From Macrostomum lignano (taxonomy: Eukaryota): DNA of 64,000 nt. Positions 4,562 to 58,816 of the stretch are shown piece by piece (the first letter of the stretch is position 1; every line of letters begins with the position of its first letter). The notes beneath the pieces were generated by a model. That model searched no databases and was not told where the DNA came from. It saw only the letters and a list, made by a program, of their open reading frames with translations. Position numbers and translations under genes: made by a program. Location of the stretch: the NCBI GenBank assembly GCA_002269645.1, contig NIVC01000150.1, positions 310,001-374,000 of the forward strand, read 5' to 3'.

Positions 4562-6539
4562 CTGCAATAGATAATTATTATTTCATGTGCTTGCTTGATT
4601 ATTGGTTCTAGTGGTTAAAATTTGCAACAATTAGGCCAATAAATTTATCAGCATAGTCCCCATAGTAGGGACTTATAGTAGAGAACAAATACAAAGTTTA
4701 ACAAACATCAAAGTTATTAAATTTTATTCTGATCCTACTGCTACTACCTAATTTAATGATATGCATATGCATAGACTTAAGATTTATTTTACTTTATAAT
4801 ATAATACCCTAACCAGAAGGAATCAACTAAGGTAAAGGTGCATTAGCCATTATTCATTTTTGCCAAGGAATGATTTTGCTAGAAAATAAATTGGTAAATA
4901 TATACTTTTATCTACCTTATCTGTAATTAAATTCTTTATTATATGAATCAATGTGTGAAATAGCATCTCATTTAAACTATTTATATTTTGTTTGTTATCC
5001 CATTTAATATAATATTCAGCTTTAAAATGTTTGACATTGAAAGTGAAAAATATGACTTTTATATTATTTATAGATAAAATCATTTAAAATATCATAAAAC
5101 AAAGAACTTTGTAGAAAATATATGATTGTTTAACTTTTAAATGAACTTTTAGAGTCCAGTGGCTCCAAAATATTTTTTCTATGGCTAAAAATGCAAGTTT
5201 ATAGCCAACTAAAAGAAAACTAAAAGAGACAGAATCCATTTCAAATCAAACACTGGCTGAAGCTAGGAGTTAAGACATGGAAAAAAGTGCATAATAAACT
5301 GTTTAAAGAGCAAGGCAAAGAAAGAACAGAGGAAGGTAATTGGGATGAAGATGACAATCCAGAAGGTGCAGATGGTCAATGAGAAAGGTCAATAGCCCCA
5401 AACATACAAGATTGGTAACAGCAATAGACACTAGATCAATGGAGCCTTAGAAAGAGGGAAGGACTTTGTCACTTTGGCACAATAGCTGAACATCAAGCGC
5501 ACAACTATGTATACAATTTTGAGATCTGGGAGAGTGGAAAATCTGCCTGAAAGGAACTGCCAAGCAAATCAGGTGTGATCAGTGGCAGATTTAGGAGGGA
5601 GGCACACATGGCATGTGCCCCCATCAAGTTTGAATTTTTTCTATGGAAAATACATAATTGTATACACATACATGTACATGATATATATTAACATATACAT
5701 GCACCTTAGTAATCTGCCTTGCCCCATTCAAATTTTTTTTGGATCTATACCTAAGTGTAATACAAAGATGTAGGAGTTCATTTGTGCTTGGGTGGAAAAC
5801 AATCTTCTGATTACACACAGAAGCAACTCAACTCACTTCTGTGCCAACATCAGAAATAAAAAGGAATTGGCCTCTATTGCTTTAGACTCTGTGCATAGGA
5901 TTTAGAATAATAATTAAATTTGTCTACAAATACCATATGCACACAGCTGCACATACATTATTATACCTAAAATCTCCTACAATCTGCTATAGCTCTAGTT
6001 TTGTATCTTCTCACAAGCCTGCATGTTTAAAAGATTAACTGGGTTATGGTTTTTACCTAACCTAGGATCGGGATCCCAATAGTCAATCCCAGGATTTTCA
6101 AATCTTAGACAAGTGTGATCCAGGATTTAGAATCCTAGGATTCAAGCATAATCAAAATCCCAAGGTTTAGAATCCTGGGATTAGGGTATAATCCTAGGAT
6201 TTTGAGATCCCAAGATTGTATTTCCTGATCCAATGTCTCATTTTTTCCTTTTTATAATGCAATAAATATAATTTAGCATATTAAAAGTTGTTTTTTAATA
6301 CTAACAAGCTGTTGAAACCTGCGGATTTTGAACCCGGGGAATTTCAATCCCTGGAACTATTTTTGCATGTACTCATATTCTAAAATCTGAGGTCAAACTC
6401 AAACAAAAACTTGTTAATAGTTAGGTTAGAATTAAACATAAAATAGAGTACATTCGTGAAAAATTAGGATTTGAGGCAAACATTTATATTGTTGGCTGGG
6501 GTACTGCGAACAGGCAAACTCTGGCCTCTGCCTCTCCTT

Positions 6540-7860
6540 ATGTCCCTTGGATCCTTAGAAACTTCGATCTTCTCTTCTGTTTCCTCTCCTCTCTCTCGTC
6601 TCTGTCTCTTCTCTCTCTCCTCTATCCCCTATTCTCTCGTCTATTCCCTCTCCCTTCTATTCTTTTATCCCTCCTCTCCTCCCTCCTCTCTACTCTCTAC
6701 TCTCTCCTCTCTCTCCTCTCATCTCTTCTCTTCTTTCCTCTCTCCTCTCTCCTCTCTTCTATCGTCTCTTCCCTCACCTCTCTTCTCTCTCGTCTTTGCT
6801 CTCTTATCTATCTCTTCTTTCTCTTCTTTTATCTTTTCTCTCTTCTCTCTTCTCATTCTTTCTGCATGTTCTCTCCTCTCTCTTTCCCTCTCTCTCTCTC
6901 CTTTCTCTCTCTCTCTCCTCTCATCTCTCTGCTCTCTCCTGTCCCATCTCTCTTTCTCCTCTAATCTCTCCCCTGTTTCCTCTCCTCTCTCGTCCTTTCT
7001 CTCTTTCCCCTGTCGTCTCGGTTCTCTCCCCTCCCCTCCTCTCTCCTCACTCACTTCTCTCTCCCTTTGTCTCACCTCTCATCTCTTATTTCTATCCTTT
7101 TTTCTCTCCACTCTCCCATCTCTCGTCTGTTCACTCTCGTCTCTGGTCTCTCATCTCCCCTCTCTCATCTGCTATCTTTACTCTCTTATACTCGTATGTT
7201 TTCTCACCTCTCTCATCTGTACTCTTCTCTTACCCCTCTTTTGACTCCTCTCTTTCCTTTCTCCTTTTTCCCTTCTCTTCTCTTCCCTCTTCTATTCTCT
7301 CCCTCTCTTGTCTTCTCTCTTCTCTCTTCACTCTCCTCTCTCCTCTCATATATCGCGTTCACTCTCATCTTTGCTCTCTACCCCTCTCTCTTCTGTCATC
7401 TTTACTCTCCACTCTCCTGTGTACTCTTCTCTTTCCCCTCTACTGAATCCTCTCTTCTTACTCCTCTTCTCTTCCCTCTTCTATACTCTCTCCCCTCTAT
7501 TCTCTTCTCTTGTCTCTGCACTCTGCTCTTTCTTCCTTCATCTCTCATCTCTACTCTCTCATCTTTCCTTTCATCTCTCTCATCTCCACAATCTCATCTC
7601 TTTCCTCTCTCCTCTTCTTCCCTTTACTCTCTCATCTCTTCTTTCACCTGTTTCCTCTCTGCTCTCCTCTCATCTGCAGCTCTCTGCTCTCTCATCTCTA
7701 CTCTCTCCTCTCGCTTTTCCTCTCTCCCCTCTTCTCCCCTCTCTCATCGTCCTCACCCCCTCATCTCTCCTATTATCTTTTATCTTTTCTTTTATCCCCT
7801 CTGTCGCCTCTCCTCTCTTCGAATCGTCTATTCCTTCTTCTTTCCACTTTCATCTGCCCC
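6540..7860. repeat. Degenerate CT-rich polypyrimidine low-complexity tract
   Basis: About 1.3 kb composed almost entirely of C/T. Confidence 0.95.
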
Positions 7861-8165
7861 TCAGCTATGACGCCTATGAGCTGGATTCTTTATCTGGCCT
7901 TTGAGGAAAAAGTATGCCCATCCCTGCTTGGAAAGCCAGTTTGTGGGACGTAGTACTCTCATGGTTGTTCTCATGCTTTGATCACGTCATCTTTCTTGCC
8001 AATTTGCAGCCCTGAAAGGAATTTGTGTATCTTCAGCTCCACTGCAGTCTGCATCAGTCTAACAACCAAGGAAATACGCATTTCTTAGGAGGCCATTTAA
8101 TATTTACACAGTACCTTTGAAAGAAACCTAAAATTTCCATGGTGTGCCTAATTTAGTAGGGTTGT

Positions 8166-8982
8166 ATTGCATTGCATCGCATCGCCTTTTCATAAATCTT
8201 TCGCTTTTACAAACCCTGCTGGATAGTGGATTCCCTCGATTTGCCAATTGCCAATTGCCATCCACTGTTAAACTGCTGCAGAGTTTGCCAATACAGAGGG
8301 GAGGGCGGGCAGAGGTTAGAATTTCTCACTAAACTGTTATGGCTAAGCGTAGCCTCTCCACTCTCGGGGTGCAGAGAAGGCTATAAATAAAGTTATTCCA
8401 AAACACTGTACATTTGCTATGTACATTCAGTCCTATTGCCTGACCCTTCGTCTGGCTCTGGGAGAATGAGTGAGTGAGTGGCACAAACAACAGAAAAAGC
8501 AGACAAACTTCACATGCTTACAGTTTCTTTTTCGGTTGAGTTACAGAGTTGAAACTTTACATTTAGATAGAGAATGGGTCAATGACTATGCATTGCATCG
8601 CATCGCCTTTTCATAAATCTTTCGCTTTTACAAACCATGCTGGATTCCCTCGATTTGCCAATTGCCATCCACTGTTAAACTGCTGCAGAGTTTGCCAATA
8701 CAGAGGGCAGTGGTTAGAATTTCTCACTAAACTGTTATGGCTAAACGTAGCCTCTCCACTCTCGGGGTGCAGAGAAGGCTATAAATAAAGTTATTCCAAA
8801 ACACTGTACATTTGCTATGTACATTCAGTCCTATTGCCTGACCCTTCGTCTGGCTCTGGGAGAATGAGTGAGTGAGTGGCACAAACAACAGAAAAAGCAG
8901 ACAAACTTCACATGCTTACAGTTTCTTTTTCGGTTGAGTTACAGAGTTGAAACTTTACATTTAGATAGAGAATGAGTCAATG
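8166..8982. repeat. Tandem duplication of a ~400-bp unit
   Basis: 8166-8585 and 8588-8982 are near-identical (TGCATTGCATCGCATCGCC...GATAGAGAATGRGTCAATGA). Confidence 0.9.
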
Positions 8983-8984
8983 AA

Positions 8985-9500
8985 GAATTGTGTCAAGTTT
9001 GAAGTCAATCGCTTTATTTGGAGCAAACTTATGGCAGCTGAAAGTTAGTCAATTTTGAAACCCTTTTACACATCTGGGCCCAGATCGGGAAAGAGAGGCA
9101 GGCGGGCGGAGGTTGGGGTGGCTGCCTCGCTGAAAAAAACAGCCTAACTTTAAAAGTGCACAGCGGCTTTCAGGATTAACTTTGAAACTCGAAATTTTAC
9201 ATGATTGTTCCAAAATAGTTGAAGATTATCTGTGTCAAATTTGAAGAGAATCGGTAAAAGTGGAACGGCGCTATGGAGGATTTAGTGAAAAAATCGCGCA
9301 TTTTGAGCAGTTTTTTGTACTTTTAGGTAGGAAGGCTCAAATTTAGGAAATTTAAAGGTAGCCTAAGACATTCTCCGTAGTGAGTTTAGGGTGGGTGTAA
9401 AATTTGGTGTCATTTGGTTGAGTGGTTTGGGAGTCCATAGCGATCAAAATTGTCCACAGACACACAGACAGAGTTTTGCTTTTTATAGGTAGAGATAAGA
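8985..9500 (+). mobile_element. Possible non-autonomous Helentron/HINE-like repeat remnant
   Basis: Repeated TGTCAA(A/G)TTTGAAG...AATCG motifs, and a CACAGACACACAGACAG...GCTTTTATAGGTAGAGAT end that resembles HINE/DINE 3' ends. Confidence 0.3.
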
Positions 9501-18737: not shown

Positions 18738-19165
18738 TCATTAATTAATTAATTTAATTAACTTCGATTAACAACAATAAGCGTTTATATACATTTCAAT
18801 GACATCTAATTAGACTTAATCTCCGTTTTTGTTCAAAACATTGCTCGTTTCATCGTTTGCTGCTCGTTTATTTGTAACTCAAAATACATGGTATATTTCC
18901 ACATTTATTTTGTTGTCTAGCGGGCAAAAGCAAGAGGTGTCTCGTTTATTTCGTTCAATGATCGAGACACCGAGGGCTTTTGGCCCTAGACAGCTAAATG
19001 AGTGGGGAATATGATATGTATCCCCGTTCGGTATGTTGGCTGCTAGCGGGGATGAGGGGGCAGATTACTCGCTGGGGGTGTGGGGGCGAAGCCCCCACAT
19101 TTAGGCCACAGACAAACTTGCCACGAACGCACGCCCACTCTCTATATTGAAATTGCAGTAATGGG

Positions 19166-19303
19166 TTAAATGGGGCAAACGCGTCAGTAACTTGATAGTC
19201 TATGGCTGTCTTCCATGCATTTAAATGGGGCAAAGTCGTCAGTAGTGCTTTTAAATGGGGCAGAGTCGTCAGTAATGTTTTTAGCTGGGGCAGACGCGTC
19301 AGT
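19166..19303 (+). promoter_or_regulatory. Four iteron-like direct repeats (TAAATGGGGCARASKCGTCAGT)
   Basis: Copies start at 19166, 19221, 19251 and 19281; the last three have a 30-bp period. They lie just upstream of the Rep-like gene. Function is inferred. Confidence 0.6.
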
Positions 19304-19531
19304 TAGATGGTTTTGAAAAGAATCACTACTGCTACTACTCTTAGTATAATCGATGAATTGATTGATTGACTGCTTTACCTTTCAAAATATAAGTTTTTAC
19401 CTAAAATACTAAGTGTGGATTTAATATTACTGAGCGGCGGCAGCAGCGATGGAGTCGAGCTGGACAGAAGCCTGTACATATGATTTGCCAGTTATTAATT
19501 GGATCACCGCATTGTGTGCTGTCGTAACAGA

Positions 19532-20035
19532 ATGTCTTCTTGGCAAGACGAGTTTACGGACAGCGACGACGAGCGCATCGCAGCTGCATTAGATGAGTAC
19601 GAGCGAGAGAGAGCCGCTGCTGCCCAGAATACGACTGCAGGCCCCGTGTCTTCTGTCCGCAAGCGGGAAGTTTCCGCCGATGGTATCCCACCTGCTGGTC
19701 AGCCGGCACAGAAACGGCGGAACGCCACGACGGACGACGAAAAATCCGACGACGAGTTCAGTGTGCTGGCGTTTAGTAGAGCTACGCAGCGGCTACCACA
19801 GCCGACACTGCCGTCACAGTCAACAATGCAGCAGCAGTCATCCGCCTCCTACGAGCTTGATGAGATGGACTCGGACGACCGGGCGGCCCTCAACGCCATG
19901 CTCGACTACGAGGCGTCCATAAGCCCTGCCGTGCCGCAGCAAAAACCGCCGCCGGAACCTGCTGCAGCTGTCGCCAACCCTGCCGAGCTCTCAACGCTGC
20001 CGAAACCGCCAGCAGTAGCCGCCGAGCTGCATCGT

Positions 20036-20072
<37 letters not shown>

Positions 20073-21796
20073 CTGAAGGGCAGCGATTAACGCAGCAGAG
20101 GGAGCCGTACTCGCAATGGTCAATGCAGACCATGCCTCTGGCGAGCCAACGACGGACCTGGAACCGGCCTGAAGCTCGAGCCGCCGAGGAGCTTCGACCG
20201 GACGAACTGTCCTCGTTAAGCTACAGCCCGCCGTCATCTGCTGCACAGTTAATTCGAATGCTACAGCGCTCGGAGTCTGGCAGTACCATCAGCATCAGCA
20301 GCAGCTCCAGCTCCCGACGCAGCAGAGGCGCAGCGGCAAACGGTCGAGGCAGAGGCGTCGGCGTCCGACAAATCGGCCAGAATCCGCTGCTGCAGGCCGA
20401 CTCGTTCCGCCAACAGTTCACGGTCACTCGATCAGCTAGCCGTTCGCTACCGCTGTATGGTGCCGCTCCGGTACAGCGGCTGGTTGAGGACACCGGAATA
20501 CTAACTGTGCGGCGCTATCTGCACGTCTTCCACATCGATAATTTGCGCTTCATCGGTGAGTAGTAGTAGTAGACTACTCTTCTCCCTGCTTAACTTTATA
20601 CTTATGCATGCAACGCCACAACAATCCCATGTACAGGCCGTGCAAAGGTGTACTTGGGCGAGGCGCTCGAGCCGCACTGCACTGAGTTGCTATTGGCGTC
20701 CAGTCCGGAACTTAACGTCGGCATGGACGAGTCGTGTGACCGCCGGCTAGTGGAGGACCCGCTGGCTGTCGACGAAGAGCAGCAGCAGCACCAGCAGCAC
20801 CAGCAGCATCGCACCTTGTCGGGCTACATTCGGCTTGTGACCAACACCGCCGGCTGGCACGTTTACGAGCTGCTGCACAGACTGCTGCCGGGATCCGAGG
20901 TGGGCCGAGGTTTCGTGCTCAACAACCTCACAACGCTGACAGTCTGCGGTGTGCGTTCCCCTGATACGATTGTGCGAAGTCTCACGCAGCACGATGGATA
21001 CCCGCTCCTGGTCGGCATTGGCGTATCTCAATGCAGCATGCTGGTGCAGGCAACGCGCTGGGTGCTCTCCTACCCGCGGACGGCCAGCCTGCCAAATAAT
21101 ACCGATGGCTTTCTGCTAGCTCACCAGCAGATGCGTGCGGCACTCCTTACGATGTTTAAGGATATCCAGCGCCAGCGTCGCATCCGTCAGGAGCGCCTCC
21201 AACGCTGCTCGGCTTGCTCAGAAGCACTGAAGCAGACAATGCGACACCTGAAGCACCGTCAATGCCCGCTCCGGGTGGCCGTGTGCAATGCCCTACTCCG
21301 GACATCAGGTGTCGTGTACCTTTACGGGCCATCAGGAGTCGGAAAAACCACGGCCGTTGAGCGCCACTGGGGCCTAGAGCGAGTATTCTGCCCAACAATC
21401 AAGCCTTTCGGTGGCAACGACTTCATCTTTGATGGGCTCGACATCAACAGGCACTCTGTCATCTTCATTGACGAAATTCGGCCCCAATATTTTGAAGGGA
21501 GTAGTGACCTACAAGCGACGCTACTGCGGCTGTTGAATGGGAACTCGTTTCTAATTAACGCGAAGCATCAATCGCATGTGTACATCGACTGGGCGCAAAG
21601 ACTCATAGTCCTGGCCGGGCACGCCTCGCCTGAAGAATACAGTCCGGATTTTCAGCGCCGGCTGCGGAACGAGAATAATGTCGCTATAGAAATGGATCAC
21701 GACATTGAAGAATGTCATGGGGAGTGCCAGCCAGTACCTGATGGCGCCTACGCTGCTGACGCCGCCGACGATGAGCCCGACAATGGCATGTACTGA
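19532..21796 (+). CDS. CRESS-Rep-like protein with SF3 helicase domain; spliced join(19532..20555,20637..21796), ~727 aa
   Basis: An 81-nt phase-1 GTGAGT...TACAG intron joins the two tracked ORFs in frame (RFI-G-RAKVYLG). Walker A GPSGVGKT, FDG..Walker B VIFIDE, LLRLLNG and an Arg finger FQRRL are present. Upstream are degenerate RCR-like motifs FHIDN, TLSGY and SLTQHD. The N-terminus is acidic and polyQ-rich. Confidence 0.75.
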
Positions 21797-22476
21797 TCTT
21801 TTGATCGATCGATCGATTAATGTTCTGTTTCTTGACTAATAACTTGGCTACTACTACTATTAGAGACTACTCTGGCCTAATAACGGTTCTTTGTTTAGTA
21901 ATCAATCAATTCATTTATTCAGCTAGCCAGCCAGTCAGTCAGCTTTTCCCCCCTCCCCCGATATTTTTGTCGCATAGTTTAAGGCCTTCTTAAGCCTATT
22001 GTTCCTGTCTATTGACTATACAGTTTTCCGTTGACTAAAAACTGCAGGTATGAAGATTTCTTACCTTGTTGATAATAATAATAATAATCCACAACAATGC
22101 ACAACAGCGATGAGCAGCGGTAGATGATTAACAACAACGGCGGCAGAAGAAAAAGGACGTAAAAAATTCAAATGGCGTGCCAAAGCAGAAAACTTAGTCT
22201 CAATAATAAAATCTCTATATAACTATCAATCGTATAGAAGAAGAAATTAAACGCTAGCTAGCTAGCTGCTGTTAGGGATGCAACTTAAATCTTCCTTGTC
22301 TTTACAGTCGAATACATTAATAGTTTATGGCTTTAAGTTTGATTACATCTATAAATAACTGGTGCATTTACATAATAAATAATAATATAATAATAATAAC
22401 ATCGAACATCTGATCGCGCAATATCAAAAGATGAAAAAATTTATAAACAATGGCTGGCTAACTAACGCATGTCCAT

Positions 22477-22949
22477 CGTACAGTTCATAGTGCGCGCATA
22501 ATTCCCTAAAATAATACGAATAGCTAAATGAATCGAGTCCCTTATAATTTTATAGAGTTTAATGCGCGCACTATGAACTGTACGTAATTTTCATGCTCTC
22601 GAACAATTAACACACTATAGGCAGTGATGAGTATAGCGGTAACAAAAATACGAGCATACAAGCATATCTGATTGCACAAATCGAACGCGTACAGTTTATA
22701 GTGCGTGCACAACTCCTAAAAATATATAAATGTGGAAATTGATTGACATTGCAAATCTCTTAATTATTTAGAGTTTTATGCGCGCACTATCGACTGTACT
22801 AATAATTATATTGCAATACTATAACTGAAAACTATGTCAACAATTAGTACATGCAGAGTCTGTAGCGGTACATAAATAAAAGCACTGCCAAATAAATTAA
22901 TCATTCAAGAACGTATAAGGCGCGCACGTACGTGCGCGCATTATACGTT
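22477..22949. repeat. Three related palindromic sites sharing a GTGCGCGCA core
   Basis: Perfect 23-bp arms at 22477-22499/22562-22584, an imperfect copy at 22689-22709/22779-22799, and a 40-bp palindrome with one mismatched pair at 22910-22949. Confidence 0.85.
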
Positions 22950-22991
22950 ATTGTTATTAATTAATTAATCAAGTTAGTGAGAACATAGCAT

Positions 22992-25643
22992 TCAACGCTG
23001 CCCGCGCATCACCTTAGCCTGCTGCTGCTGCTGCTGCTGCTGCTGCGAGAATTCAGCTGCATCAGTCCTTCTCCTCCGCCGCTGACGAATTCCGTGCAAT
23101 ATGGAATCAGCACGCTGGGTCGGCCGAATCGCAGCGGAATAGTCTTCGCCACAGTCGCCGCCACCGCTGCCATTACTGCCAGCGAACATTGCTGCTCGTC
23201 GGACAACAAGAGCGGAGGATATTGCCGCAGCAGCGCCGCCGTCGACGACTGCTGGAGCAGATACTAGGGCGGCAGATGACGATGTTGACGACGACAAAGA
23301 TGACATTCCCATCGCGGAGCTGTTGCCAACCGCCTGACGTGAGCGGACCACGGCGCCCATTTGCAGAGCTCGGTGCGCATTATAACCGTAATTACGGTAT
23401 ATAACTGCAGCAGAGGTGCCGTGGGCGCGTGCAAATGCGTGCAGCTGCGCAGGCTCCATCGCCAGGACAACGCTGCTCAAGGTCCGGCGCCAGTCTGTCG
23501 CTACATAATGTCTGCCGAGCAATCGCTCTCCTCCGGCGCTGATCATCCGGCTGAAGGCGCTCTCAGTGTAAACCCGGCCGAAGATGTCCAGAAACACCGT
23601 GGACACCTCGACCGCAGGAGCAGCGACTCCGCGCGCAGCCAGGCTCGGCCGGATATAGCAGTCGTGCAGGCGCAGCAGGGCGTCGCAAAACGTATCCGAC
23701 AGCACCATGGTAGCCGGCTCGCCATTGTGCCCGGCCTTGTGCGGAACCTCTGTCAGCGGCATCACCAGGTGCGAGTGACCCTCCAGATCGGACTCCGTGG
23801 CGCTGATCGAGGTGTCCCGAAACAGCTGATCCATGTCGTCAGCTGCCCGGTGTCGCACCCTACGGTCCAGCAGATGCTGTCGCCGCAGATAGATCCACGG
23901 CAGGAGTCGCACTGGCTGTTCGACACTGCAGAAGAACAAGCACTCCTGCACGATGCGGCGGACACAGGCCACCTTGGCGCATAAGTTGTCATCGCCGGCG
24001 TCTGCGTGGTCGTCGGCGGCGGCGGCGCTCCAGTTGCCAGTCTCCGGCAGTCTCTGCCAACTGTGCTCGAAGAGCATCTTAAAGAAGCGGTCGCGCCGGT
24101 CGAAGATGGCGCCGACCTCGCTCCGCTTAACGTAGCTGGCCATGTAGGTCATCTGACGACCGTGATGGCCCAGCTTGTTCAGCTGTTCCTGCAGGGAGCG
24201 GATGGCGGCAAACTCGCCCTTGGCCTCGTTCAGCAACGAAAGCAAGCGTGAGACTGTCAGCTGCCTGGCAGCCAGCGAATCCTTACAGCAGTCGTCACCG
24301 CCGCCGTCATCATCTTTGCTGGCATTTTTTCCCTCGCTCAAAATTTCTGACTGGCGCAGCCCGATTGCGTCGAGCACCTTTTGGAAACAACGGTTGCCGC
24401 GCACATTCAGCCAGCCCTCCAAACACAGAAAAATTGACACCATCTCTTGGCACTTGCGGCCGGCTGTTGAAGGTGCCAACTTTAACTCCTGGGCGACAAC
24501 CTCAAGCCCGAAGACACTGGCGACGAGGTCGGGTCGCAGCACTAAGTCGGCCAGAGTCAGCTGCTTCCGAAGCCAGAGCCGTTCCAGCGTGGCGCCAACA
24601 GAGCAGCAAATTTTCTGCCAGCGACGGCTGTGGCTCTGGTTGGCAGAGACGTGCAGTTTAACTGGTGCGGACCACCAGAGTGCTGTCAATCGACCAAGCA
24701 TGGCATCAATGGACGGTCGATCTGCTGCTACTCCAAGGGCCACCTTTCTGGCGGGGTGCTCTTTCGGTGGTAAAGGTTCCAGCCTGAAATAGCGTCGGTG
24801 CTGTCCTCCTGGTTGCAGCGTTTTTTCCTTTTTCCTTTGTGCTATCTCGCCTTCTTTCTGCGAGGAAGCAGCAGCAGCAGCATAATCAGAGTCACCAACC
24901 TCAGGACTAGTCGGCTGCTGCAACTCGGGCGCCGCTATTTCCAGTGGTTCAGACGCAACGACGGCACTTAGGTCGGAAGCTCTGTCGTTCAACTGAATGC
25001 AATCAGTAGTCGGCTGCTGCTGCGGCGACACAGGTATTAAACTGCTGCAGGCTGCTCGTCCCATTGAATCTGCAGCAACCATCAGACGATCGTAGATCGC
25101 CCCGTCGTCGTAATATTCTGCTGATGCTCTTAACGCAGCAGACCTCATTGCCCCGTCGTCGCCATCCTCTGCTGATGCACTTAACGCAGCAGACCTCATT
25201 GCCCCGTCGTCGCCATCCTCTGCTGATGCTCTTAACGCAGCAGACCTCATTGCCCCGTCGTCGCCATCCTCTGCTGATGATGTCACCGCAGCAGACTGAT
25301 GCTCGGTTGTCACTGGCCGATGGACAGATAATGGGCATAGATGAGCTCGCAGTCGGCGGCGTGACTGTCCGCAGGCGGAACAAACGCCTATCACTTCTAG
25401 ACGATGACTGGCCTTGGTGCTGCGGCTGCATTTGATTGCCAGCCAGATCATGTCTTGCCGCTGTTTGGTAGTTGCGGCCGCCCATTCGTTCTCTGTTGGC
25501 CGCATCCGCTCCGGCATATCACTTAGCGAATAACTTTGAACGATATATTTCTCGTGCCGGTTTTTGTAGTGCCTCTTTAGATTTCCACCGGTCACGCACT
25601 CACAGCACAATGGGCAGACGGAGCTTCTTCTTCCAGAGGGCAT
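22992..25643 (-). CDS. Zn-finger + tyrosine-recombinase-like protein (HK-type, 883 aa)
   Basis: N-terminal C2H2 (CPLC...HYKNRH) and 17-aa x3 coding repeats (51-bp period, ~25110-25290). The C-terminal half aligns by eye to a YR fold: PVR (Arg I), HKAGHNGEPA..L....Y.RP (Lys), VFLDIFG, ATDWRR (Arg II), FARAHGTS...RNY (Tyr). Confidence 0.65.
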   Translation of the reverse strand: MPSGRRSSVCPLCCECVTGGNLKRHYKNRHEKYIVQSYSLSDMPERMRPTENEWAAATTKQRQDMIWLAIKCSRSTKASHRLEVIGVCSACGQSRRRLRAHLCPLSVHRPVTTEHQSAAVTSSAEDGDDGAMRSAALRASAEDGDDGAMRSAALSASAEDGDDGAMRSAALRASAEYYDDGAIYDRLMVAADSMGRAACSSLIPVSPQQQPTTDCIQLNDRASDLSAVVASEPLEIAAPELQQPTSPEVGDSDYAAAAASSQKEGEIAQRKKEKTLQPGGQHRRYFRLEPLPPKEHPARKVALGVAADRPSIDAMLGRLTALWWSAPVKLHVSANQSHSRRWQKICCSVGATLERLWLRKQLTLADLVLRPDLVASVFGLEVVAQELKLAPSTAGRKCQEMVSIFLCLEGWLNVRGNRCFQKVLDAIGLRQSEILSEGKNASKDDDGGGDDCCKDSLAARQLTVSRLLSLLNEAKGEFAAIRSLQEQLNKLGHHGRQMTYMASYVKRSEVGAIFDRRDRFFKMLFEHSWQRLPETGNWSAAAADDHADAGDDNLCAKVACVRRIVQECLFFCSVEQPVRLLPWIYLRRQHLLDRRVRHRAADDMDQLFRDTSISATESDLEGHSHLVMPLTEVPHKAGHNGEPATMVLSDTFCDALLRLHDCYIRPSLAARGVAAPAVEVSTVFLDIFGRVYTESAFSRMISAGGERLLGRHYVATDWRRTLSSVVLAMEPAQLHAFARAHGTSAAVIYRNYGYNAHRALQMGAVVRSRQAVGNSSAMGMSSLSSSTSSSAALVSAPAVVDGGAAAAISSALVVRRAAMFAGSNGSGGGDCGEDYSAAIRPTQRADSILHGIRQRRRRRTDAAEFSQQQQQQQQQAKVMRGQR

Positions 25644-26186
25644 CTTTCTCTAATAATTATTACAAATCATAGGATACAGTGTTGGAAAAAATACCCGGTC
25701 CCCATCCAGCATATATATATGTAGAGATATGTAGAGATAGGAGTTTCATATTTAAAGCATCCTTCCATAACCCGCCTCCTCATATTTCATTGATGGCAAG
25801 CTTATTGGCTTTCAGCTCAGTCAAGTGATCACTATTAAACGATTGACTTAATAACTATTGGTTAAATCAACTGCAGGTCTGGGCTTGGCTGGCTGGCTGG
25901 CTGGCTTGTACTCATCTGACTGAGTAATTTGATGCTTTTTACCATAGACTAAAGTTTACGGTCTCGCCCTCACTAGTGGAATTTTCCGTAGTTTCTTTTA
26001 ACCATAGACTGCTTAACCATAGACTGCTGCAGACCTGTCCGCTTGGGTTTATAAAACTCAGTCAGTCCCTTCCCTCCCTCAAACTGCAAGCATCAGCGCC
26101 CCAGCCTAGCCTACAGTTTCTACAGCTTTTCGAGTAAGTTACATTCATATCTGCTGCTCTGTGCATTATTCTATTACGAAAACAAT

Positions 26187-26505
26187 CAGCTTTCACTACA
26201 GGGCCCTTACAGGTGCTGCAGTTACAGGTGGAGCAGCAGCCTCTCCCTCTCTCTGATATACCCCTTTGTAATTAATTTAAACTCGAACGAATGCAGTTTT
26301 CACTACAGGGCCCTTACAGGTGCTGCAGTTACAGGTGGAGCAGCAGCCTTTCCCTCTCTCTGATATACCCCTTTGTAATTAATTTAAACTCGAACGAATG
26401 CAGTTTTCACTACAGGGCCCTTACAGGTGCTGCAGTTACAGGTGGAGCAGCAGCCTCTCCCTCTCTCTGATATAATATATACCCCTTTGTAATTAATTTG
26501 AACAT
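26187..26505. repeat. 107-bp tandem repeat x3 upstream of the YR gene
   Basis: Units start at 26187, 26294 and 26401 (CAGYTTTCACTACAGGGCCCTTACAGG...). Confidence 0.9.
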
Positions 26506-27328
26506 GCAGCTTTTCTAACATTTTCTATTCGCACTTAATTGCTGCTATGCCTCTAATCAGTATACATATAGTATTGGAGCGAAATAATAAACGTGTCAAT
26601 AATCAGACTGTTGTCAATCAATCGATCCATCGCTTTACACCAAAAGCATGGAACCTGTACTGTACGTATACATACACCGCTGCTCTGATTCGCTGCAATA
26701 TCAACACAGAGAGTGAATTCGTGTGTTCGTGCGATTATAGCGCAAAAACCATAGACTCGTTATTATCAGCTAAGCGAATTACATAAACTGATGCTGCTAA
26801 TCTAAAAATAGCCACAACTGGCTAGCTTATACTTGGTGGAATTTCGTCTTTCATTTCTTGTTATTAAAGAGGCCGGATGAAAATGTTTGATTTCTGAAAA
26901 AAAGCTCGATTCATTATAAACGCTGTTGCTTTCGGTTGCTTCTGCGCTTGGAAATATAAAACTGAAAAATAAGTGTTTTTTTCGCGCCTCTGCAGCTTTT
27001 GATGTGGCTCAAATGAGCCTAGGGAAACCGGATAAGGACCGGATAATTAGGAAAGTAGTATAACAAATTTTAATTTATTTGCATCGATGCAAAGTGAGGC
27101 AAACTAGCAAAAAGTCAAAGGGAACTAAAGTACAAAAGAACTATAAAAAATAACAATAAAAATGAAAAGTATAAATTACGTTTTTAGTCTATGGCACAAA
27201 GCTGAAGGCTAATCTAGAAAGAAATTACTGTACGACGAAGTAAAGTTATTTGTGCAGCAACACTGCAAGCCGGGAGACTTATACGACTGAGAGACGTGCT
27301 GATTTTATCGACAAATAAGCCAAGAGAT

Positions 27329-28604
27329 ATGTCTGGACAGTCTGGTGCTCGACATCAAATCTTGTCGGATGCAGAAGCTGATGCGCTGGTAAGTGCAACA
27401 GTACCACCAAATACGGTCAAGAAGAGTGCGTGGATGATATCGACGTTTAAAGAGTGGCACGAATGCAAAAAAGAAGACTGGGCAAAGAATGGCGGCTCCT
27501 CTCTGATGGTATTGAAATCTATGGACGAATTTACTAGGTCCGACTTGAACTATTTGCTGAAGCTTTTCATCCTTGAGGTAAGGAATAAGAAGCATGAGCG
27601 CTACTCGGCTGGAACTCTCAAGGACTTCGTGTCTATGCTGCAGTATGAAATGCGCAATGTCTACGGAAAGGACTGGAGCCTTTGGACGGATGTTCAGTTT
27701 GCTGAAAGTAGAAAATCGCTGGATGCGGCTATGAAGCTATCAACTGCGGAAGGAAAAGGAGTCGGGCTAAAAAAGTCAGAGCCTGTGACGAAATCTATCG
27801 AAGATGATTGCTGGAATGCTGGTGTGCTAGGCTCCCACAATCCTGAGCAACTAGTTTGCACCGTAATTTGGCTAATTGGCAAGCACTTCGGTCTGCGGGG
27901 TGGTAGTGAGCTACGTGATTTGGAATTCCAGTGCGAGATCAATTTGGATGGCAGTGGGATTAAAGAGTGCCTTGTTTACGAGGAGTGTCGGCGGACCAAG
28001 ACGAATCAAGGTGGCCTGAAAGGAATTCAGAAACAACCGAAAGTAGTCAAAGCTTTCCATGCTGCATGCAGATCCGGAGCAATGCGTTGTGTGCCTATAC
28101 ATCAAGTACGTTTCGTTGCGCCCCGAGAATTGTTCAAAAGCTTTGTTTCTTGCCGCCAAAAAGCACTTGACGGAATCGAACGGAAAAGCCTGGTATAGTG
28201 TTCAGCCTATTGGGAAGAACACTATCTCGACAATTGTGAAGGCCGCAGTGTCTGAAGTTCGGCCAAACAGCACTGCTCGTTTCTCGAATCAGAGCCTGCG
28301 AAAAGCATGTGCTACTCAACTCCACGAGGCTGGTGTCGAACGCGGAGACATTGCTCGGATCACTGGTCACGCTACTACCAAGGCTCTGGAGAAATACATA
28401 GCGCCATCAACAACACGACAAAAGATCCAAAGTGCTATTTTGAGTGGAGACGCCACCGAGGCTTCTGCTGCAAGTATCATACAACAGTCTCATGTTACCG
28501 TGTCCGACGTCAATACCGAGGTTTCTATCGAACCACCTGCTAGTAAGCGCATGCTCATCGAGGCAGACGGTGAAAAAAACGTTGTGAAAATCACATTCTG
28601 TTAG
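27329..28604 (+). mobile_element. Crypton (DUF3504-type) tyrosine recombinase copy A, one frameshift near 28065
   Basis: EVRNKKHERYS, HFGLRG, CVVCLY..Y..LRP, WYSVQPIGKNT, SNQSLRK, ITGH and EKY. ORFs 27296..28198 and 28059..28604 overlap and contain no internal stops. Confidence 0.85.
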
Positions 28605-29585: not shown

Positions 29586-30412
29586 GCAAAAATTCCAAGA
29601 ACTTAGAATGAGCAAGGCATGAGCGATGGAGCAGGGACTCCAAAGCTCAATCGTGCAAAAAGCGGTGAATGTGTCTGACGGTCTGCAAATGAACGGCCGG
29701 AGTATTTTCATAATGAACAATAGTATTTTTTTAACAATTTCCAACTGAAATGGGTACTGTGACAATTGTGTCGTACTTATGGAGACTAATTCTCCCCATT
29801 AATATTAATTGATATATGCTTTCTAATTCGGGTTTGTTCTTTCTGTTCTAAAAATAACCCACCGTTCTCTCGAGGTCAACACATCCAAAGGTTTCAAATG
29901 AAGGGTGTGGATCAGGCTTGACCATAGACACTTCCATTATCCTAAAGACTGATTTTTTGACAATGGGTGGAGGCGCGAGTGTGCTAGGGGAAGCAACACC
30001 TAGACTACGAGTGCGCGTAGTGTCCATCCATGGCGTTGCTCCACCTTGAAACCCTCGCGCCTCCACACCCATTATCCTGAACTGGGACCTTAGAATAGCT
30101 TTACTGTCGCTCGGAAGATACCATAGACAAAATCTTAGACTGATCTCCAGAGAACAAAAAGGGATGTTGAGGTCAAGCAAGCCAGAATATAGATAAAATT
30201 CTTGATTTTGTAATGTGTTTGTATTTGATTTCGCATGCCAGCTCTGGCGGTGGTGGCACAATAGATCATCCATGTCTATGGGTCGTGACAACCACAGTTA
30301 TTTACATAAAGGCAGGTCGTATGCCACTGAGGAGTTCCTCACGCTTATTTTCTTGCTCACACCAACCCACGGTCTTACAATGTTTTCACGAGTGGCGAAG
30401 CCATGAATTCAT

Positions 30413-30780
<368 letters not shown>

Positions 30781-30934
30781 CTGGGTGATAAGCTATGCCA
30801 TAGACTACAACTCTACGAAGTCAGAAAAAGTCGAGAAGGAGAGGAAGAAAACGAAGACTAGCTCAGTATTTTCTTCGATTTAAACTTCCACTGAGCCTTG
30901 ATCAAGTACGACGGAATAGTGGAAGGGAGATTGT

Positions 30935-33759: not shown

Positions 33760-34308
33760 TCAAAGGACACTTTTAGCTATAGTTAATTCGTCGCACAAAT
33801 GTCTCACAAAATTTAGTTCAACTTGCCACAGGGTTGTCGTGACTATTGAAGCCGGTAAAGCATAGGCCCGATTGGATGGAGACAGTGGCATCCGAGCCAG
33901 GAGCAGGGAATATGACTTTCCATCCTGCCGCTTCAATTTAAAGTAGAAGTACCTTAAGTACTGATTGAGGGTTTCGGCCGGCACTTCTGAAACGTCTCGT
34001 AGTTTCTCACTTGCTAGGAAATTAAGGAAGCGTTCACCGTGAATGTACATCTGCTTCCTCGTTTCGGCAGGTAGGCTTTCAATTTCTACTCGATCCATCT
34101 CGTTAACATCAAGTTGCTCGCCATCTAGGCACGGCAGTTCATCGTTGGAACGATCACTTTGAATGTAGTCAAGGAACGCGGCAAAGTCGTCGTCGCGTCG
34201 GTCGATGTTTGAAGTCTCGGAAATAAAGTTCAGTTCGAACGAGTCGACATTGCCTAATTCGTCGATAGGCAGATTGCGCCAATTGATTGGAAAATGAATG
34301 CCTTCCAT
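33760..34308 (-). pseudogene. Crypton YR copy C, N-terminal part only
   Basis: LNQYLRYFYFKLKRQDGKSYS is followed by an abrupt loss of homology. Confidence 0.7.
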
Positions 34309-34579
34309 TCTATCGCGACTCTATGAAAATGATTCTACTCTCCCGATGAACAGCGACTCTTTAAAACTCCGTCATCTTGACCATAGACATATCATTCTCT
34401 GTGATTTCGTGTGTTCTGCCGTTGTCTGGAACTGAACTAACTGACTTTTTCTAACCCTTGGCCTTTACCATAGACGTGGCAGATATTAAGATGTGGGGGC
34501 TTCGCCCCCACACCCCCATTTCCGTCCCCCACCCACTTTGATTTCTAACCCCTAGCTGACAATTTGGACAATGATGTCG

Positions 34580-34668
34580 TCTGGAATTGAGATTTCAGTT
34601 AATGGCCATAGACACGAGCGTGCGTAGCGCTCGTGTCTATGGCCATTAACTGAAATCTCAATTCCAGA
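34580..34668. repeat. Perfect palindrome: 41-bp arms and a 7-nt loop, with a CCATAGAC/GTCTATGG core
   Basis: 34580-34620 is the exact reverse complement of 34628-34668; the loop is TGCGTAG. Confidence 0.95.
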
Positions 34669-42788: not shown

Positions 42789-44386
42789 TTGACTATGGCG
42801 TCTGTAATCGACTCGGCTCTGAATCCTCCATTAATTGATTTTCGCTACGCTACGGTGTCTGGATTAAGTGGCGACGAAATGTTTATTGAAAGTGTGTCCA
42901 GCAACTTTGAGAGGACGGGCGACGATTTGACTGCACTGATAGCGGATTGCACGTTCAGCGAGGAATTAGAGAAACTTTTCAGCTCGATCCGGAAACCTTG
43001 TGTAACCTTGACGAATTGGAAAGTCTGCCGCTCAACTGGAACGCGACAACGAATGTCATTCGACTGTCTCTAAGGAGAAAGCTGTGATCAACCGCTTGAC
43101 AGCCTGGTTGGCGGAGAATAATTTAAAAGTGGATTACGCGACTGCTTCGGTGGAGGAAATTTCCAAATGGGTCCGCTACTTCTATGCGACTCTGCGTAAG
43201 TCAGACGGCAGCTTCTATTCGCCGAATACAATCGTAGGAATTCGAGCCGCACTGTTCAGGTACTTTATGAAATTACGTGGCCTGAATATCATCGCTCATA
43301 AGGCTTTTGAGGAATTTGATGGTGAAGAATGTTTGCAATGCGTATTTGAAGTCCGGTGGTCGAGTGCAGCATTACGAAGCCATTGAGTCGGACGACCTTG
43401 TCAAGCTTGCTTCTTACTTCGACAGAAGCACTCCAACACGTTTGCAAGAAGAGGTATATTTCAATGTGTTATTTTATTTCGGCAATCGCGGCAGAGAATG
43501 GCTACGAGGTCTCACTGTTCGTTCATTCCGAGAGAAGGCCCTATCAAACGGAGCTATGGCGATCGAGTTGCAAGGCAGCACCTCAAAGAATGTAAAAGGC
43601 TGAGTGACATGCGACTCTGCGACGACAATAAACAGGCCTTGATGGTGGCCAAGCCGGAGTCAAGGCACTGTCCAGTTCAGGCCTTCCAGCTTTATTTGTC
43701 GAAAATTACTGCCGTGCCGGGTTGGAATCAGTCCGAGGACTTCTTTCTGCGTCCGAAACCACGAGTGAATGCCGATGGCATCTGGTACACCAAAGTACCA
43801 GTTGGAATCAACACTTTGGGGCCGTTGCTCAAGAAGATCTCTTCGAATGCTAACCTGTCCAAGCTGTACACTCCGCATTGTGTGCAACCTACAGTTGTTA
43901 CGGAGCTGCATGAAGCTGGCTTTTCTGTCGAAAAAATTGCGAAGGTGACAGGTCACAAGGTGAGCAATTCTTTATTCTTAGTAAGTTTATTGACACATGG
44001 ACAAGGAATTTATTAAACACCACCTCTATTCACAGAATAGCGCGTCGGTAGAACGATACATCCGGAGAGGCAAGAAGAGGGACTCGATCATGGCAGGGAT
44101 GAGTGATCAGCTGACAGTCGCTCTAGCTGGAACTATGCCGGCACCAAGTTCTACATTGAGCGAAGCTCCTGCAAGGGCTGTTACAACTACCGACCCGTGC
44201 GCCCTGAGCGACGCTCCTACAAGGGCTGTTGCGACTACCGACCCGTGCGGATCAGCGTCAATGTCAACTGTCAAGAAGTCACTGGTTGTTGAAGAATCGA
44301 CCACCACACTTGTAGCAGCCCCCACTAAGCGGATGAAGATTTTGGCAAACGGCGAAACGAATGTTGTGCAGTTTATTTTCGAGTAA
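42789..44386 (+). mobile_element. Crypton YR copy D, frameshifted, with a 76-nt intron (43960-44035)
   Basis: YFYATLRKSDGSFYS, FYFGNRGREW, CPVQAF..YLSK, WYTKVPVGINTL, TPHCVQ (Arg II is Gln), VTGHK|intron|NSASVERY. Confidence 0.85.
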
Positions 44387-45829: not shown

Positions 45830-47065
45830 CATCTCACTTAAATTCATGTGCTAAAAATACAACCCGCTAATTTATATAACAGCTAGTAAGAAATCTCCGG
45901 GTTGTATTTAATTACAACCCGCAAATTGGCCATAGACATCAATACTGTATTGGGGTGTGGGGGCAAAGCCCCCACATTCTGTACCATAGACATATTTTAT
46001 AAAGACAGACAGATAATGTGACAGATAAATAGCATGAAAGCCTCACTGAAACAAATTTAACTTCAATTAATTGACTCTAGTTAATTTCACTTTAACTGAA
46101 ACAAATAATGGCAGACCGAAGACTTTTTTTAAACCCGTTGGTTGATTTTTCCAAAGACTACGTCGGAGACTGTGATCCAAATGTCTGGGCAGAGAAATGG
46201 ACATCTGTTGGGGATAAAGAGGATCAGGAGGACCACGGCATACGAAATCGTGCCCGCTGTGCTGCAAGCTCCCGCCGCCCATGTCCAGATACCTAACCTA
46301 ACTAATGTGTATTCGTAAGACGGTTCGTTCCGTCTAATCGTATATTTGTGTTAAAAAAGGAGCAGAAATAATTCGTTATCGTAGGAGCCCTTGTCTCGCT
46401 CCGCTCCTTCGTTAGTTAATTCCATTTTCTCTAGTGCGCCCAGCTCTTTAGTAACTGTCTGGGTCTTGGAGAATTATGACCATAGATAGTTCAATCGCAT
46501 TCGTAAAGTTTACAGTTAAAATCCATATCACATCTAACCTAGATGTGACCTAGAAATAGGTCACCTAGATAACCTAGAAATCTAACATCTGCGTGTTATT
46601 TAAAAATACGAGTACAATACTTCTTTTGAACCATTAACAGTGCTACGTGTTTACGGTATTTTTCTGAAACATACACAACCAAGAACAGACGTAATAAGGT
46701 AGCAGTCAAAACTGATTGTAAACTGTTCAATATTGATTAGGAGTTGTCAAAAATGAAGCGGACTTTTGGGGTACACAAGCCATAGAGTGTCAGTTTTGAA
46801 GCAACTCTGTCAAAATAGAATCGGACTTTGCGGCCCAACCAGTCAGGCTATTTTAGTTTGTGTGTAAAAGGATGGAGAAAAATTTCCTTTCTTATAGACA
46901 GTCCTCAGCCGTTCCTAGGCCAAAGAAACGAAATCAAGTGGGGATTATAATATTTAATTGCCGCAGCCAGCGGGAGGAAATGAGAACTAAGCCTCGGCCA
47001 TAGACTATTGGCTATAAAGCTCTATAAAGCCGAATATTCTGTGTAAGATCAGAAAAGCTTCAGTT

Positions 47066-48448
47066 GTGTGTAGCTTGGTACCGAATATGGGTGACACCTC
47101 TGCTGCTGTCGTTGTTGAAGCCCCGTATATGGAGATTTCGCCGGACCTACTGGATTTCATCCTGAAGCCCGGGGATAACGCTGGACCTATTGAAGCCTCT
47201 CTCACTGGCTGGTTCGAGCAACTTTCGGAGAATGAAATTGCCAGACACATTGAAGAGACCGTGCCGAAGACCACCAAGAAAAAGGCGCAGTGGGCCTTTT
47301 CCGTCTTCCGCGAGTGGCATGACGAGAAGAAGCGTGCCTGGCGATGGGTGAAGGCCCGTCACTTATGGTTCTCGCTGAGCTGGAGGATGCTAGCAAATGT
47401 GACCTGAATTACCTGCTGAAATTTTTTGTTATGGAGGCCCGGAACAAAGATGGTGAGCGCTACTCTGCGTCGACGCTGAAGGATCTGTATTCAATGCTAC
47501 AGTATCACTGGCAAAACACGTTCAAGAAGAATTGGAGCTTCTGGCTTGACAAAGAGTTCGCCGACAGTAAACGTGCTCTAGATGCAGCCATGAAAATCTC
47601 GACCAAGGCTGGAAATGGTGCAGGATTGCGGAAGGCAGATGTGATCCCCGAGTCTATTGAAGAGAAGCTTTGGATCGAAGGTGTGCTTGGAGTGAAGGAA
47701 CCCAAGATGCTGGTGATCACGCTTGTTTGGCTCGTTGGCAAACACTTTGCATTGCGTGGTGGCCAGGAGTTACGAGATCTGCTGTTCGATCGCCAAATCA
47801 AGCTTGAGACGGTTGACGATGAAGTGTCTGAAGTATGTGGACAATGCCGTGACCAAAACTCATCAGGGCGGCTTACAAGGACTACGAAGGGACCCCAAAG
47901 TCGTTCGTGCTTTCCACACTGAGAATCACCAAAAATGCATTGTGTGCGTCTACAAGCAGTACGTCTCTGTGCGTCCTAATGAGTGCAACGAGGCGCTGTT
48001 TCTGGGATGGAATCGAAACTGGAATGGCCAGTCTGGATCTGCCTGGTTGACAAGGGCACCGATTGAACGTCATTCATTGGCAACCGTCGTCAAGGACGCC
48101 GTGGCCGTGGTTGCTCCCTCTGACACGGGACGCTACTCGAATCAGAGTCTCCGTAAGAGTTGCGCAACCCGCCTCCGCGAGGCTGGTATAGAACGGGCGG
48201 ATATCTGCCGTGTGACTGGCCACAGCTCCAGTGCAGTGGAAAAGTACATCGGTACCTCGGTGACCATGGAGAAACGCACGAGTGCACTGTTGAGTGGTTC
48301 CTCAACCGGCCAACCGGTGAGTGAGTCTCGGGTGACTGCAGCGCAGGTGCAAGTGCCCTTGCCTCCTCTGGAGGTGCAGGCTCCTACGAAGAAAATGCGC
48401 ATAGAGGCTTTTGGAGACAGCAACAGAGTGGTGTTCCACTTTGATTAG
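47066..48448 (+). mobile_element. Crypton YR copy E (same subfamily as A), two frameshifts
   Basis: EARNKDGERYS, HFALRGGQE, SNQSLRK, VTGH and EKY. Frameshifts at ~47342 and ~47825. Confidence 0.85.
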
Positions 48449-58757: not shown

Positions 58758-58816
58758 ATCAACAAAACCAAGTTCTGTACCTTGTGCGGGTTGGCTCGGT
58801 GCGCTGGGTTGGGCCT

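Follow-up and report, generated by a model that had tools for sequence, protein, structure and literature searches.

Does the ~6.8-kb segment of the flatworm Macrostomum lignano that carries two long facing genes belong to a mobile element, and to what kind? The segment lies in a 64-kb stretch of contig NIVC01000150.1 (called the window here, with position 1 as its first letter), and it had been put forward from the sequence alone as an undescribed integrative element coupling a CRESS-type Rep to a tyrosine recombinase. Window positions 19111 to ~25950 are best read as a two-gene unit that is present in low copy number in M. lignano and of which this copy has kept both genes intact. Tentatively, we take the unit for a recombinase-based DNA element resembling Cryptons, or for what remains of such an element; it carries an accessory ATPase, and it may be mobile. 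In its strongest form, an element of CRESS-type Rep plus recombinase, the earlier claim finds no support.

Two genes, and no more, are found between 19.1 and 26 kb of the window, and they face each other (Table 1). On the plus strand, the open reading frames (ORFs) 19499-20563 and 20648-21796 fuse in frame over an 81-nt GT...AG phase-1 intron (20556-20636). The spliced product has 727 amino acids (aa) counted from the first ATG and contains no internal stop. On the minus strand, an 883-aa ORF (22992-25643) is uninterrupted and requires no intron. The ORF reading and the in-frame join thus agree with the original prediction of two long intact convergent genes, ~727 aa after splicing (+) and 883 aa (-), and the intron is in frame as proposed, with identical boundaries in the second copy described below. 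The GC-rich style noticed in both genes is also seen here, with a guanine-cytosine (GC) fraction of 0.56-0.60 in the genes versus 0.41-0.45 in the flanks and with CAG/CTG runs in both of them.

Table 1. Positions of the two-gene unit, its repeats and the neighbouring mobile-element genes in the window
Feature	Position	Strand	Remarks
Left edge of the unit common to L001	19111..19160	+	blastn of window against L001; sequence upstream of the edge unrelated in both loci
Iteron-like array, 4 direct repeats of ~30 nt, core AAATGGGGCARAS...GTCAGTA	19161..19305	+	200-340 bp upstream of the ATPase gene start
ATPase gene, exon 1	19532..20555	+	acidic, polyglutamine, Ser-rich, low-complexity N-terminal half; no family match
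ATPase gene, intron	20556..20636	+	81 nt, GT-AG, phase 1; boundaries identical in L001
ATPase gene, exon 2	20637..21796	+	stop codon included; stretch preceding the ATPase domain without detectable domain
P-loop ATPase domain, AAA+/SF3-helicase-like	21260..21700	+	Pfam on the domain alone, motif positions
Palindrome 1	22477..22584	.	40-nt arms, GCGCGC core; DNA-fold z -11.2
Palindrome 2, related to palindrome 1	22688..22803	.	DNA-fold z -3.4
Palindrome 3	22891..22966	.	24-nt arms, no spacer; just 3' of the recombinase-like gene stop codon; DNA-fold z -7.3
883-aa Zn-finger and tyrosine-recombinase-like gene	22992..25643	-	intact ORF; dN/dS of the core relative to L001
C-terminal catalytic-like domain, aa 560-772	23328..23966	-	R579, K636, D717-x-x-R720, T743, Y752; family alignment, hhalign, XerD spacing
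All-helical middle domain, aa 355-545	24009..24581	-	family-conserved; judged by secondary structure alone from a low-confidence model
In-frame 51-bp tandem repeat, 3.9 copies, within the recombinase-like gene	25099..25296	-	absent from the L001 homolog
N-terminal region, two small Zn-binding motifs	25329..25622	-	46% identity to L001
Upstream region of the recombinase-like gene	25644..25954	.	weak L001 homology (GGCT repeats and CCATAGACTAAAGT), last trace of the shared unit
107-bp tandem repeats	26187-26507	.	outside the unit common to L001
CryptonA-type tyrosine-recombinase genes or remnants	27296-28604, 47165-48448, 43690-43974, possibly 33760-34308	+, +, +, -	Pfam DUF3504, Phage_integrase, QRICH1
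Ty3/gypsy-type long terminal repeat retrotransposon, coding region	54976-59785	-	three long open frames: gag-like (PNMA/Retrotrans_gag, 322 aa), protease-reverse transcriptase-RNase H 864 aa, integrase 395 aa

The pair is present a second time in the genome. The ATPase ORF is 97% identical to the M. lignano hypothetical protein BOX15_Mlig013629g1, which is encoded on contig NIVC01001938.1 (locus L001); this match identifies the window as nuclear DNA of the flatworm. L001 is arranged in the same way: the iterons are followed by the ATPase gene with the identical intron, then by a palindrome-bearing intergenic region and, in convergent orientation, by a homolog of the 883-aa gene. Co-occurrence of the two genes elsewhere had been named as a test of the original prediction, and the convergent pair indeed recurs at this unrelated locus with its orientation kept. 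To the left of the unit the two loci share no homology for at least 8 kb, and to its right for at least 3 kb; the genes upstream of the L001 unit are COG7 and EME1/MUS81, and the rest of the 64-kb window gives no further match to L001. The L001 copy is broken in both genes, by one frameshift in the ATPase gene and by one frame change plus one in-frame stop in the recombinase-like gene, where two of the five signature positions are also substituted. Its iteron array is conserved but split by an insertion of ~220 bp. The gene model at L001 stems from an annotation of M. lignano that was guided by RNA-seq and left out transcripts overlapping annotated repeats. This suggests transcription of the ATPase gene and absence of the unit from the repeat library published for this species.

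What kind of protein does the minus-strand gene encode? An exhaustive HMMER search with aa 290-775 against 1.84 billion representative proteins finds nine relatives, with E-values from 1e-19 to 4e-4, so that the protein belongs to an orphan family, and a word-indexed protein search with the 883-aa protein and the family profile gives no match. All nine are fragmentary, and the contigs that encode them, 0.6-2.4 kb long, belong to a JGI metagenome, an SRA run and an ENA metagenome. Several diverged copies stem from one sample, and the frames on at least two contigs are interrupted, one by a frameshift and one by an in-frame stop. Such multi-copy, interrupted relatives are typical of decaying repeats. 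No ATPase homolog is found on these contigs, which are too short to hold neighbouring genes, and scans of viral and metagenome contigs, IMG/VR included, reveal no relatives of either protein.

The two Zn-binding motifs of the 883-aa protein are C-x2-C-x11-H-x4-H at aa 10-30 and C-x2-C-x8-H-x-C at aa 88-103, and both are kept in L001. Judged from its predicted helices, the middle domain (aa 355-545) is possibly the counterpart of the core-binding domain of recombinases. In the family alignment, the conserved positions of the C-terminal domain are R579 in QPVRLxPW (QPVRLLPW in the window), K636 in EVPHK, D717-x-R719-R720-T721, T743-S744 in LGTS, and Y752 in NYG. K636 (6 of 6), R719/R720 and T743-S744 are invariant in all family members covering them. 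Of 7 members, 5 have R579, and of 6 members, 5 have Y752; the broken L001 copy is among the exceptions.

These positions were compared with those of five bacterial recombinases fetched by accession, namely XerD, XerC, FimB, FimE and lambda Int; a search of IMG/VR with lambda Int for diverse recombinases had returned near-identical copies only. The reference positions are R148, K172, H244, R247, H270 and Y279 of XerD, of which R148, R247, H270 and Y279 are invariant in the five-recombinase alignment. The spacing from R720 to T743 is 23 residues and that from T743 to Y752 is 9, which equals the XerD distances R247 to H270 and H270 to Y279. In an hhalign comparison of the C-terminal domain with the five recombinases (P 0.0028, probability 11%, score 26.8), R579 is paired with XerD R148 and the RRT motif with XerD LRH. 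K636 is left off XerD K172; the distance from the Arg to the Lys is 57 residues here, 38 in a relative and 24 in XerD. K636 is located between two predicted strands, which form a two-strand hairpin. Column shuffles score 13.0 +/- 2.0 (0 of 150 reach 26.8), shuffles of 10-column blocks score 13.5 +/- 2.3 (0 of 100), with a maximum of 20.6 over both kinds of shuffle, and reversed profiles score 13.3 and 10.7. Within the HxxR motif the Arg is invariant (R720), most members have Asp (D717) in place of the His, and the His/Trp III position is a family-invariant Thr (T743). For the structure check proposed with the original prediction, an AlphaFold2 (AF2) model of the core shows the helices in the expected order and the two-strand hairpin around K636, at a mean confidence (predicted local distance difference test, pLDDT) of 50, and a Foldseek search with it gives nothing significant. 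It is plausible that the C-terminal domain is a very divergent tyrosine-recombinase-like domain. The earlier assignment is partly supported, by the R/R/Y spacing and by an hhalign score above all shuffles, and it lacks confirmation from Pfam, the PDB and fold searches, with Asp and Thr at the His positions.

The plus-strand product differs from what had been predicted. Its first ~430 residues are of low complexity and match nothing in Pfam, and the ATPase domain comprises the C-terminal ~150 residues. The motifs of this domain are Walker A GPSGVGKT (572-579), Walker B VIFIDEI (616-622), KH (651-652) and RR (682-683); the position of motif C/sensor 1, within VLAGHASP (666-673), reads AGH, and the Asn is missing. 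With the domain alone as query, Pfam AAA is matched at 9e-6 (26.6 bits, above the cutoff of 21.2), DUF5906 at 7e-4 (profile positions 1-106 of 114) and RNA_helicase at 8e-3 (1-86 of 105), the latter two below their curated cutoffs. DUF5906 and RNA_helicase are families of superfamily 3 (SF3) helicases, and the distance between Walker A and Walker B, ~43 residues, suits SF3 better than classic AAA proteins. No HUH nuclease or Rep family is matched at E-values up to 10 in the 205 aa preceding the ATPase domain or in the end of exon 1. One pentapeptide, FVLNN (aa 434), resembles motif I but stands isolated, with neither HUH/HUQ nor YxxK at the expected distance after it. Pfam also gives no match to an origin-binding domain, Helitron_like_N, PIF1 or superfamily 1 (SF1) helicases in the 727-aa protein. 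Across Pfam, PHROGs, NCBIfam and the PDB sequences, the ATPase protein and its sub-domains have matches at the level of the P-loop only. The best PHROG match is a Mu B-type 'DNA transposition protein', over the P-loop only (E 0.013), and tblastn against phage and plasmid collections returns P-loop matches to terminases and ABC transporters only. An AF2 model built without an alignment is unusable (pLDDT 36). From its motifs, we would class the 727-aa protein as an AAA+/SF3-like ATPase rather than as 'Rep-like'. The designation as a CRESS-type Rep is unsupported because no HUH nuclease is detectable: HUH motifs II and III and a family match are not found, and the Asn of motif C is missing.

A comparison of the window with L001 shows that the two genes have diverged very unequally. 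The block 19111-22550 (3.4 kb) is 85-96% identical between the loci, with a synonymous divergence (dS) of 0.01-0.065, about 0.04, in the ATPase gene, and the high identity stops inside palindrome 1 at ~22550. For the core of the recombinase-like gene, dS is 1.07 and the nonsynonymous divergence (dN) is 0.185, giving an omega of 0.17; the 883-aa ORF has therefore evolved as a protein-coding gene under purifying selection. With a dS gap of ~25-fold, the pair was not simply transposed or copied as a single unit. Possibly, recombination at the palindrome, or gene conversion there, has exchanged the left halves of old paralogous cassettes; alternatively, a 3.4-kb ATPase unit that spreads alone is possible. 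M. lignano has undergone a recent genome duplication, and 180 Mb of the assembly lie in duplicated blocks at >=95% identity. This duplication could account for the young age of the left block, but not for the unrelated flanks.

Where does the unit begin and end? Alignment of copies, which had been suggested for defining the ends and the empty sites, gives a sharp left edge at 19111 and an undefined right edge, and no empty site is seen. On the right, homology to L001 fades to a weak trace by ~25950, and because of this the 107-bp repeats and the proposed end at 26760 fall outside the shared unit. The span first proposed, 19116-26760, is therefore right on its left side, near 19111, and too long on its right; the flanking 107-bp repeats do exist (26187-26507) but were rejected as part of the unit. 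Terminal inverted repeats are not found in the cassette. The inverted boxes TAGTCTATGG and CCATAGACTA, formerly taken as flanks of the element, cannot mark its ends because they are copies of a dispersed 8-mer, CCATAGAC, which occurs at 44 sites in the window against 1.5 expected (~30-fold excess, both strands, 18365-63734). A hairpin, GTGGGGGC-NNN-GCCCCCAC, at 19080 was also considered as an element end and rejected as a dispersed motif. The iteron-like repeats and the three related palindromes between the 3' ends are all present as described (Table 1), and the iteron core has three matches in the window, all within 19161-19305, with 0.33 expected.

The 8-mer CCATAGAC (reverse complement GTCTATGG) is often clustered or placed in small palindromes, e.g. 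at 34606-34642, and does not occur in window 1-18 kb. It is also found at L001 17.6-20.7 kb, where a 35-bp tandem array is located at 20591-20726. Perhaps it is a motif of promoters or for a transcription factor, or else part of a short repeat dispersed in M. lignano. The hairpin GTGGGGGC-NNN-GCCCCCAC occurs three times in the window with none expected (19080-19098, 34493-34511 and 45957-45975) and at L001 ~20720-20746. Each of its window copies is near CCATAGAC sites, one of them 12 bp left of the left edge of the cassette, and the hairpin probably belongs to the dispersed repeat of this 8-mer. Downstream of a CCATAGAC cluster, a donor-like site G|GTAAGT on the plus strand is present at window 26040-26140 and at L001 18690-18820, preceded by a TATA-like box in the window only. 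These regions may represent a divergent promoter and first exon of a plus-strand transcript leading away from the recombinase-like gene.

How would such a unit work? The minus-strand gene would supply a DNA-binding Zn-finger protein with a very divergent tyrosine recombinase (R579-K636-(D717)xxR720-T743-Y752), which would cut and rejoin DNA via a 3'-phosphotyrosine link, as in Crypton and other tyrosine-recombinase elements. The plus-strand gene, with its one intron, would encode a protein whose N-terminal half is disordered and whose C-terminal part is an ATPase of the AAA+/SF3 type. This protein may serve as an accessory motor, either as a helicase or remodeller at the iteron array or the palindromes, or as a target or assembly factor.

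Several results weigh against a Crypton-like element. The comparison is based on two copies, the window and L001, and from these two neither a right end nor a target-site feature nor an empty site was found. The 883-aa protein and its sub-domains have no match in Pfam, PHROGs, NCBIfam or the sequences of the PDB. The hhalign probability of 11% was obtained with thin profiles (Neff 2-3), for which the shuffles are a lenient null, and Asp and Thr stand where the catalytic pentad has its two His. For the recombinase-like core, the AF2 model was built from a ten-sequence alignment with a pLDDT of 50; its best Foldseek match in the PDB is the integrase 3nkh at a non-significant E-value of 2.9, and a fold search against BFVD gives nothing significant. 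For the ATPase, the word-indexed protein search and the viral and metagenome contig scans find no relatives outside M. lignano; the exhaustive HMMER search used the 883-aa protein, not the ATPase, as query. The ~25-fold dS gap belongs here as well, and the young age of the left block could be due to recent duplications at >=95% identity, with no need for transposition.

The unequal divergence could also mean that two separate units are neighbours. The block 19111-22550 would then be a young duplicate, or a piece that moves or converts by itself, next to an old recombinase-like gene that is decaying or domesticated as a DNA-binding factor. Both the identity of 85-96% (dS 0.01-0.065) on the left versus a dS of 1.07 in the recombinase-like gene and the sharp edges of the high-identity block, at 19111 and inside palindrome 1, are in line with this. 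It is well documented that Crypton recombinases have been domesticated and have lost catalytic residues in the process (PMC3212892), and both His positions are non-His here. However, the genes are convergent at both loci despite the ancient divergence of their recombinase-like members, which argues for old linkage plus gene conversion and not for two chance insertions. Furthermore, R, K, R and Y are kept in the intact members, unlike in the domesticated DUF3504 proteins, and we consider two independent units rather unlikely. Unlikely, too, are ordinary lineage-specific host genes that never moved, with an old segmental duplication that left one of the copies to decay, and with gene conversion or the recent genome duplication making the left parts alike. 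Such genes would explain why the ATPase gene has a spliceosomal intron and a transcript-based model and is not flagged as a repeat, why the recombinase-like gene is under purifying selection, and why no termini or target-site features are found in two copies; the 180 Mb of duplicated blocks at >=95% identity would provide the background. They do not fit the flanks, which differ between the loci for >=8 kb (left) and >=3 kb (right), nor the recombinase-like signature, nor the multi-copy and interrupted relatives elsewhere, nor the transposon-rich window.

The model of the original prediction, an integrated small replicon, appears quite doubtful. Here, the recombinase would integrate and excise a circle of ~6.8 kb, and the helicase-like protein would bind the iterons and unwind an origin for the copying of this circle, as Rep, E1 and large T do. 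The layout does resemble an ambisense small circular replicon in which, once circularised, the iterons are located between the two 5' ends; strong hairpins are present, and an SF3 helicase would fit both the Walker spacing (~43 residues) and the two Pfam families of SF3 type that are matched over their full length. Against it stand the lack of HUH motifs II/III, of nuclease and origin-binding domain matches and of the motif C Asn, the absence of a capsid or other viral gene and of relatives in IMG/VR, and the proposed terminal boxes, which are a widespread dispersed motif. A spliceosomal intron and a very unequal divergence are also unlike a recently integrated replicon. Also improbable would be a new class of eukaryotic integrating elements, in which the highly divergent recombinase would insert and remove the DNA, a nuclease-less SF3/AAA+ initiator of the E1/large T kind would act at the iterons to copy a circle, and the palindromes would allow modules to be swapped between lineages.

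Returning to the Crypton-like element with an accessory ATPase, we compared the cassette with known systems. Cryptons were reportedly described by Goodwin in 2003 as DNA transposons encoding a tyrosine recombinase. As in these elements, the sole recognisable DNA breakage and joining enzyme of the cassette is the tyrosine-recombinase-like protein, there is no reverse transcriptase, terminal inverted repeats are lacking, and genes may carry introns. The cassette differs from Cryptons in its N-terminal Zn fingers, in the added ATPase gene, in a tetrad R-D-R-Y in place of R-H-R-Y, and in a recombinase without detectable similarity to Crypton recombinases, PF00589 or PF12012. Against the Crypton-type recombinase of the window itself, the 883-aa protein gives an hhalign probability of 0.3%, and it matches neither DUF3504 nor Phage_integrase. 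Because of this tetrad and the missing similarity to the window's Crypton-type genes, the unit is not filed as a Crypton. In the Crypton survey of Kojima & Jurka (2011, PMC3212892), the elements have the recombinase alone with its R-H-R-Y tetrad, and a helicase or ATPase is not mentioned.

The likeness to Reps from CRESS-DNA viruses and pCRESS plasmids, to E1 and to large T consists of the SF3-like spacing, the weak full-length matches to SF3 Pfam families, the iteron-like array upstream of the gene, and the convergent two-gene layout as in ambisense small replicons. The cassette protein differs from them by the absence of HUH motifs II/III, of a Rep family match and of the motif C Asn, by ~430 low-complexity residues upstream, by a spliceosomal intron and by the lack of a capsid gene. 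The iterons also differ from those of a CRESS origin, as no stem-loop is adjacent and the hairpins are 3.2 kb away in the linear map; a nick-site motif is not definable from two copies. Unlike in Helitrons, no Y2 HUH Rep fused to a PIF1-type SF1B helicase is found in the cassette.

Pairs of a recombinase and an AAA+ ATPase are known from bacterial transposons, namely IstA/IstB of IS21, A/B of Mu and TnsB/TnsC of Tn7, whose recombinases are DDE enzymes. The cassette resembles them in pairing a recombinase gene with a P-loop ATPase helper, but its recombinase would be of the tyrosine type, it is eukaryotic and intron-bearing, and there is no significant homology. Polinton-like viruses and virophages are said, in work by Yutin from 2015, to combine a tyrosine recombinase with a primase-S3H helicase. 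They share with the cassette, as read here, the presence of a tyrosine recombinase and an SF3-type helicase in one eukaryotic integrating element; they differ in having 14-40 kb with capsid and packaging genes, whereas the cassette has two genes in ~6.8 kb. Neither capsid genes (double or single jelly-roll) nor a packaging ATPase are found in the cassette, and IMG/VR yields no relatives. Literature searches turned up no report of a eukaryotic element in which a small unit lacking capsid genes combines a tyrosine recombinase with an SF3/AAA+ ATPase. No described family is matched in Pfam, PHROGs, NCBIfam or the PDB either, in line with the earlier statement that no family of this kind is known.

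Few eukaryotic DNA elements are moved by tyrosine recombinases: Cryptons, Starships and the recombinases of DIRS-type retroelements. None of those described is known to combine the recombinase with an ATPase of helicase kind. If our reading is true, this list would be extended by a family that does so and of which one intact copy in a flatworm, its decayed paralogue and a few metagenome fragments have been seen so far. It would also provide a very divergent recombinase, with Asp and Thr at the His positions, for comparing catalytic pockets, and would add an uncatalogued repeat type to the genome of M. lignano, a regeneration model whose repeat annotation discarded unclassified elements. If the genes are domesticated instead, they would be another case of recombinase co-option.

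In the surroundings of the cassette, the CryptonA-type genes listed in Table 1 show 44-47% mutual identity and no similarity to the 883-aa protein, and the one adjoining the cassette (27296-28604) contains one frameshift. An Rfam scan of window 17-30 kb found nothing. Further away, a 299-aa ORF on the minus strand (1887-2786) with a PAP2 phosphatase domain (E 6e-28) is an ordinary host gene. The region 6000-9000 has an extreme strand asymmetry (GC skew -0.58, AT skew -0.48) with overlapping ORFs of 200-270 aa on the plus strand, and is probably a low-complexity or satellite tract. A long CT/GA-type microsatellite at 30213-30861 reads as (LS)n ORFs, and it is resembled by a GA-rich tract in the 2.6-kb intergenic insertion of the L001 copy (L001 12.9-14.5 kb).

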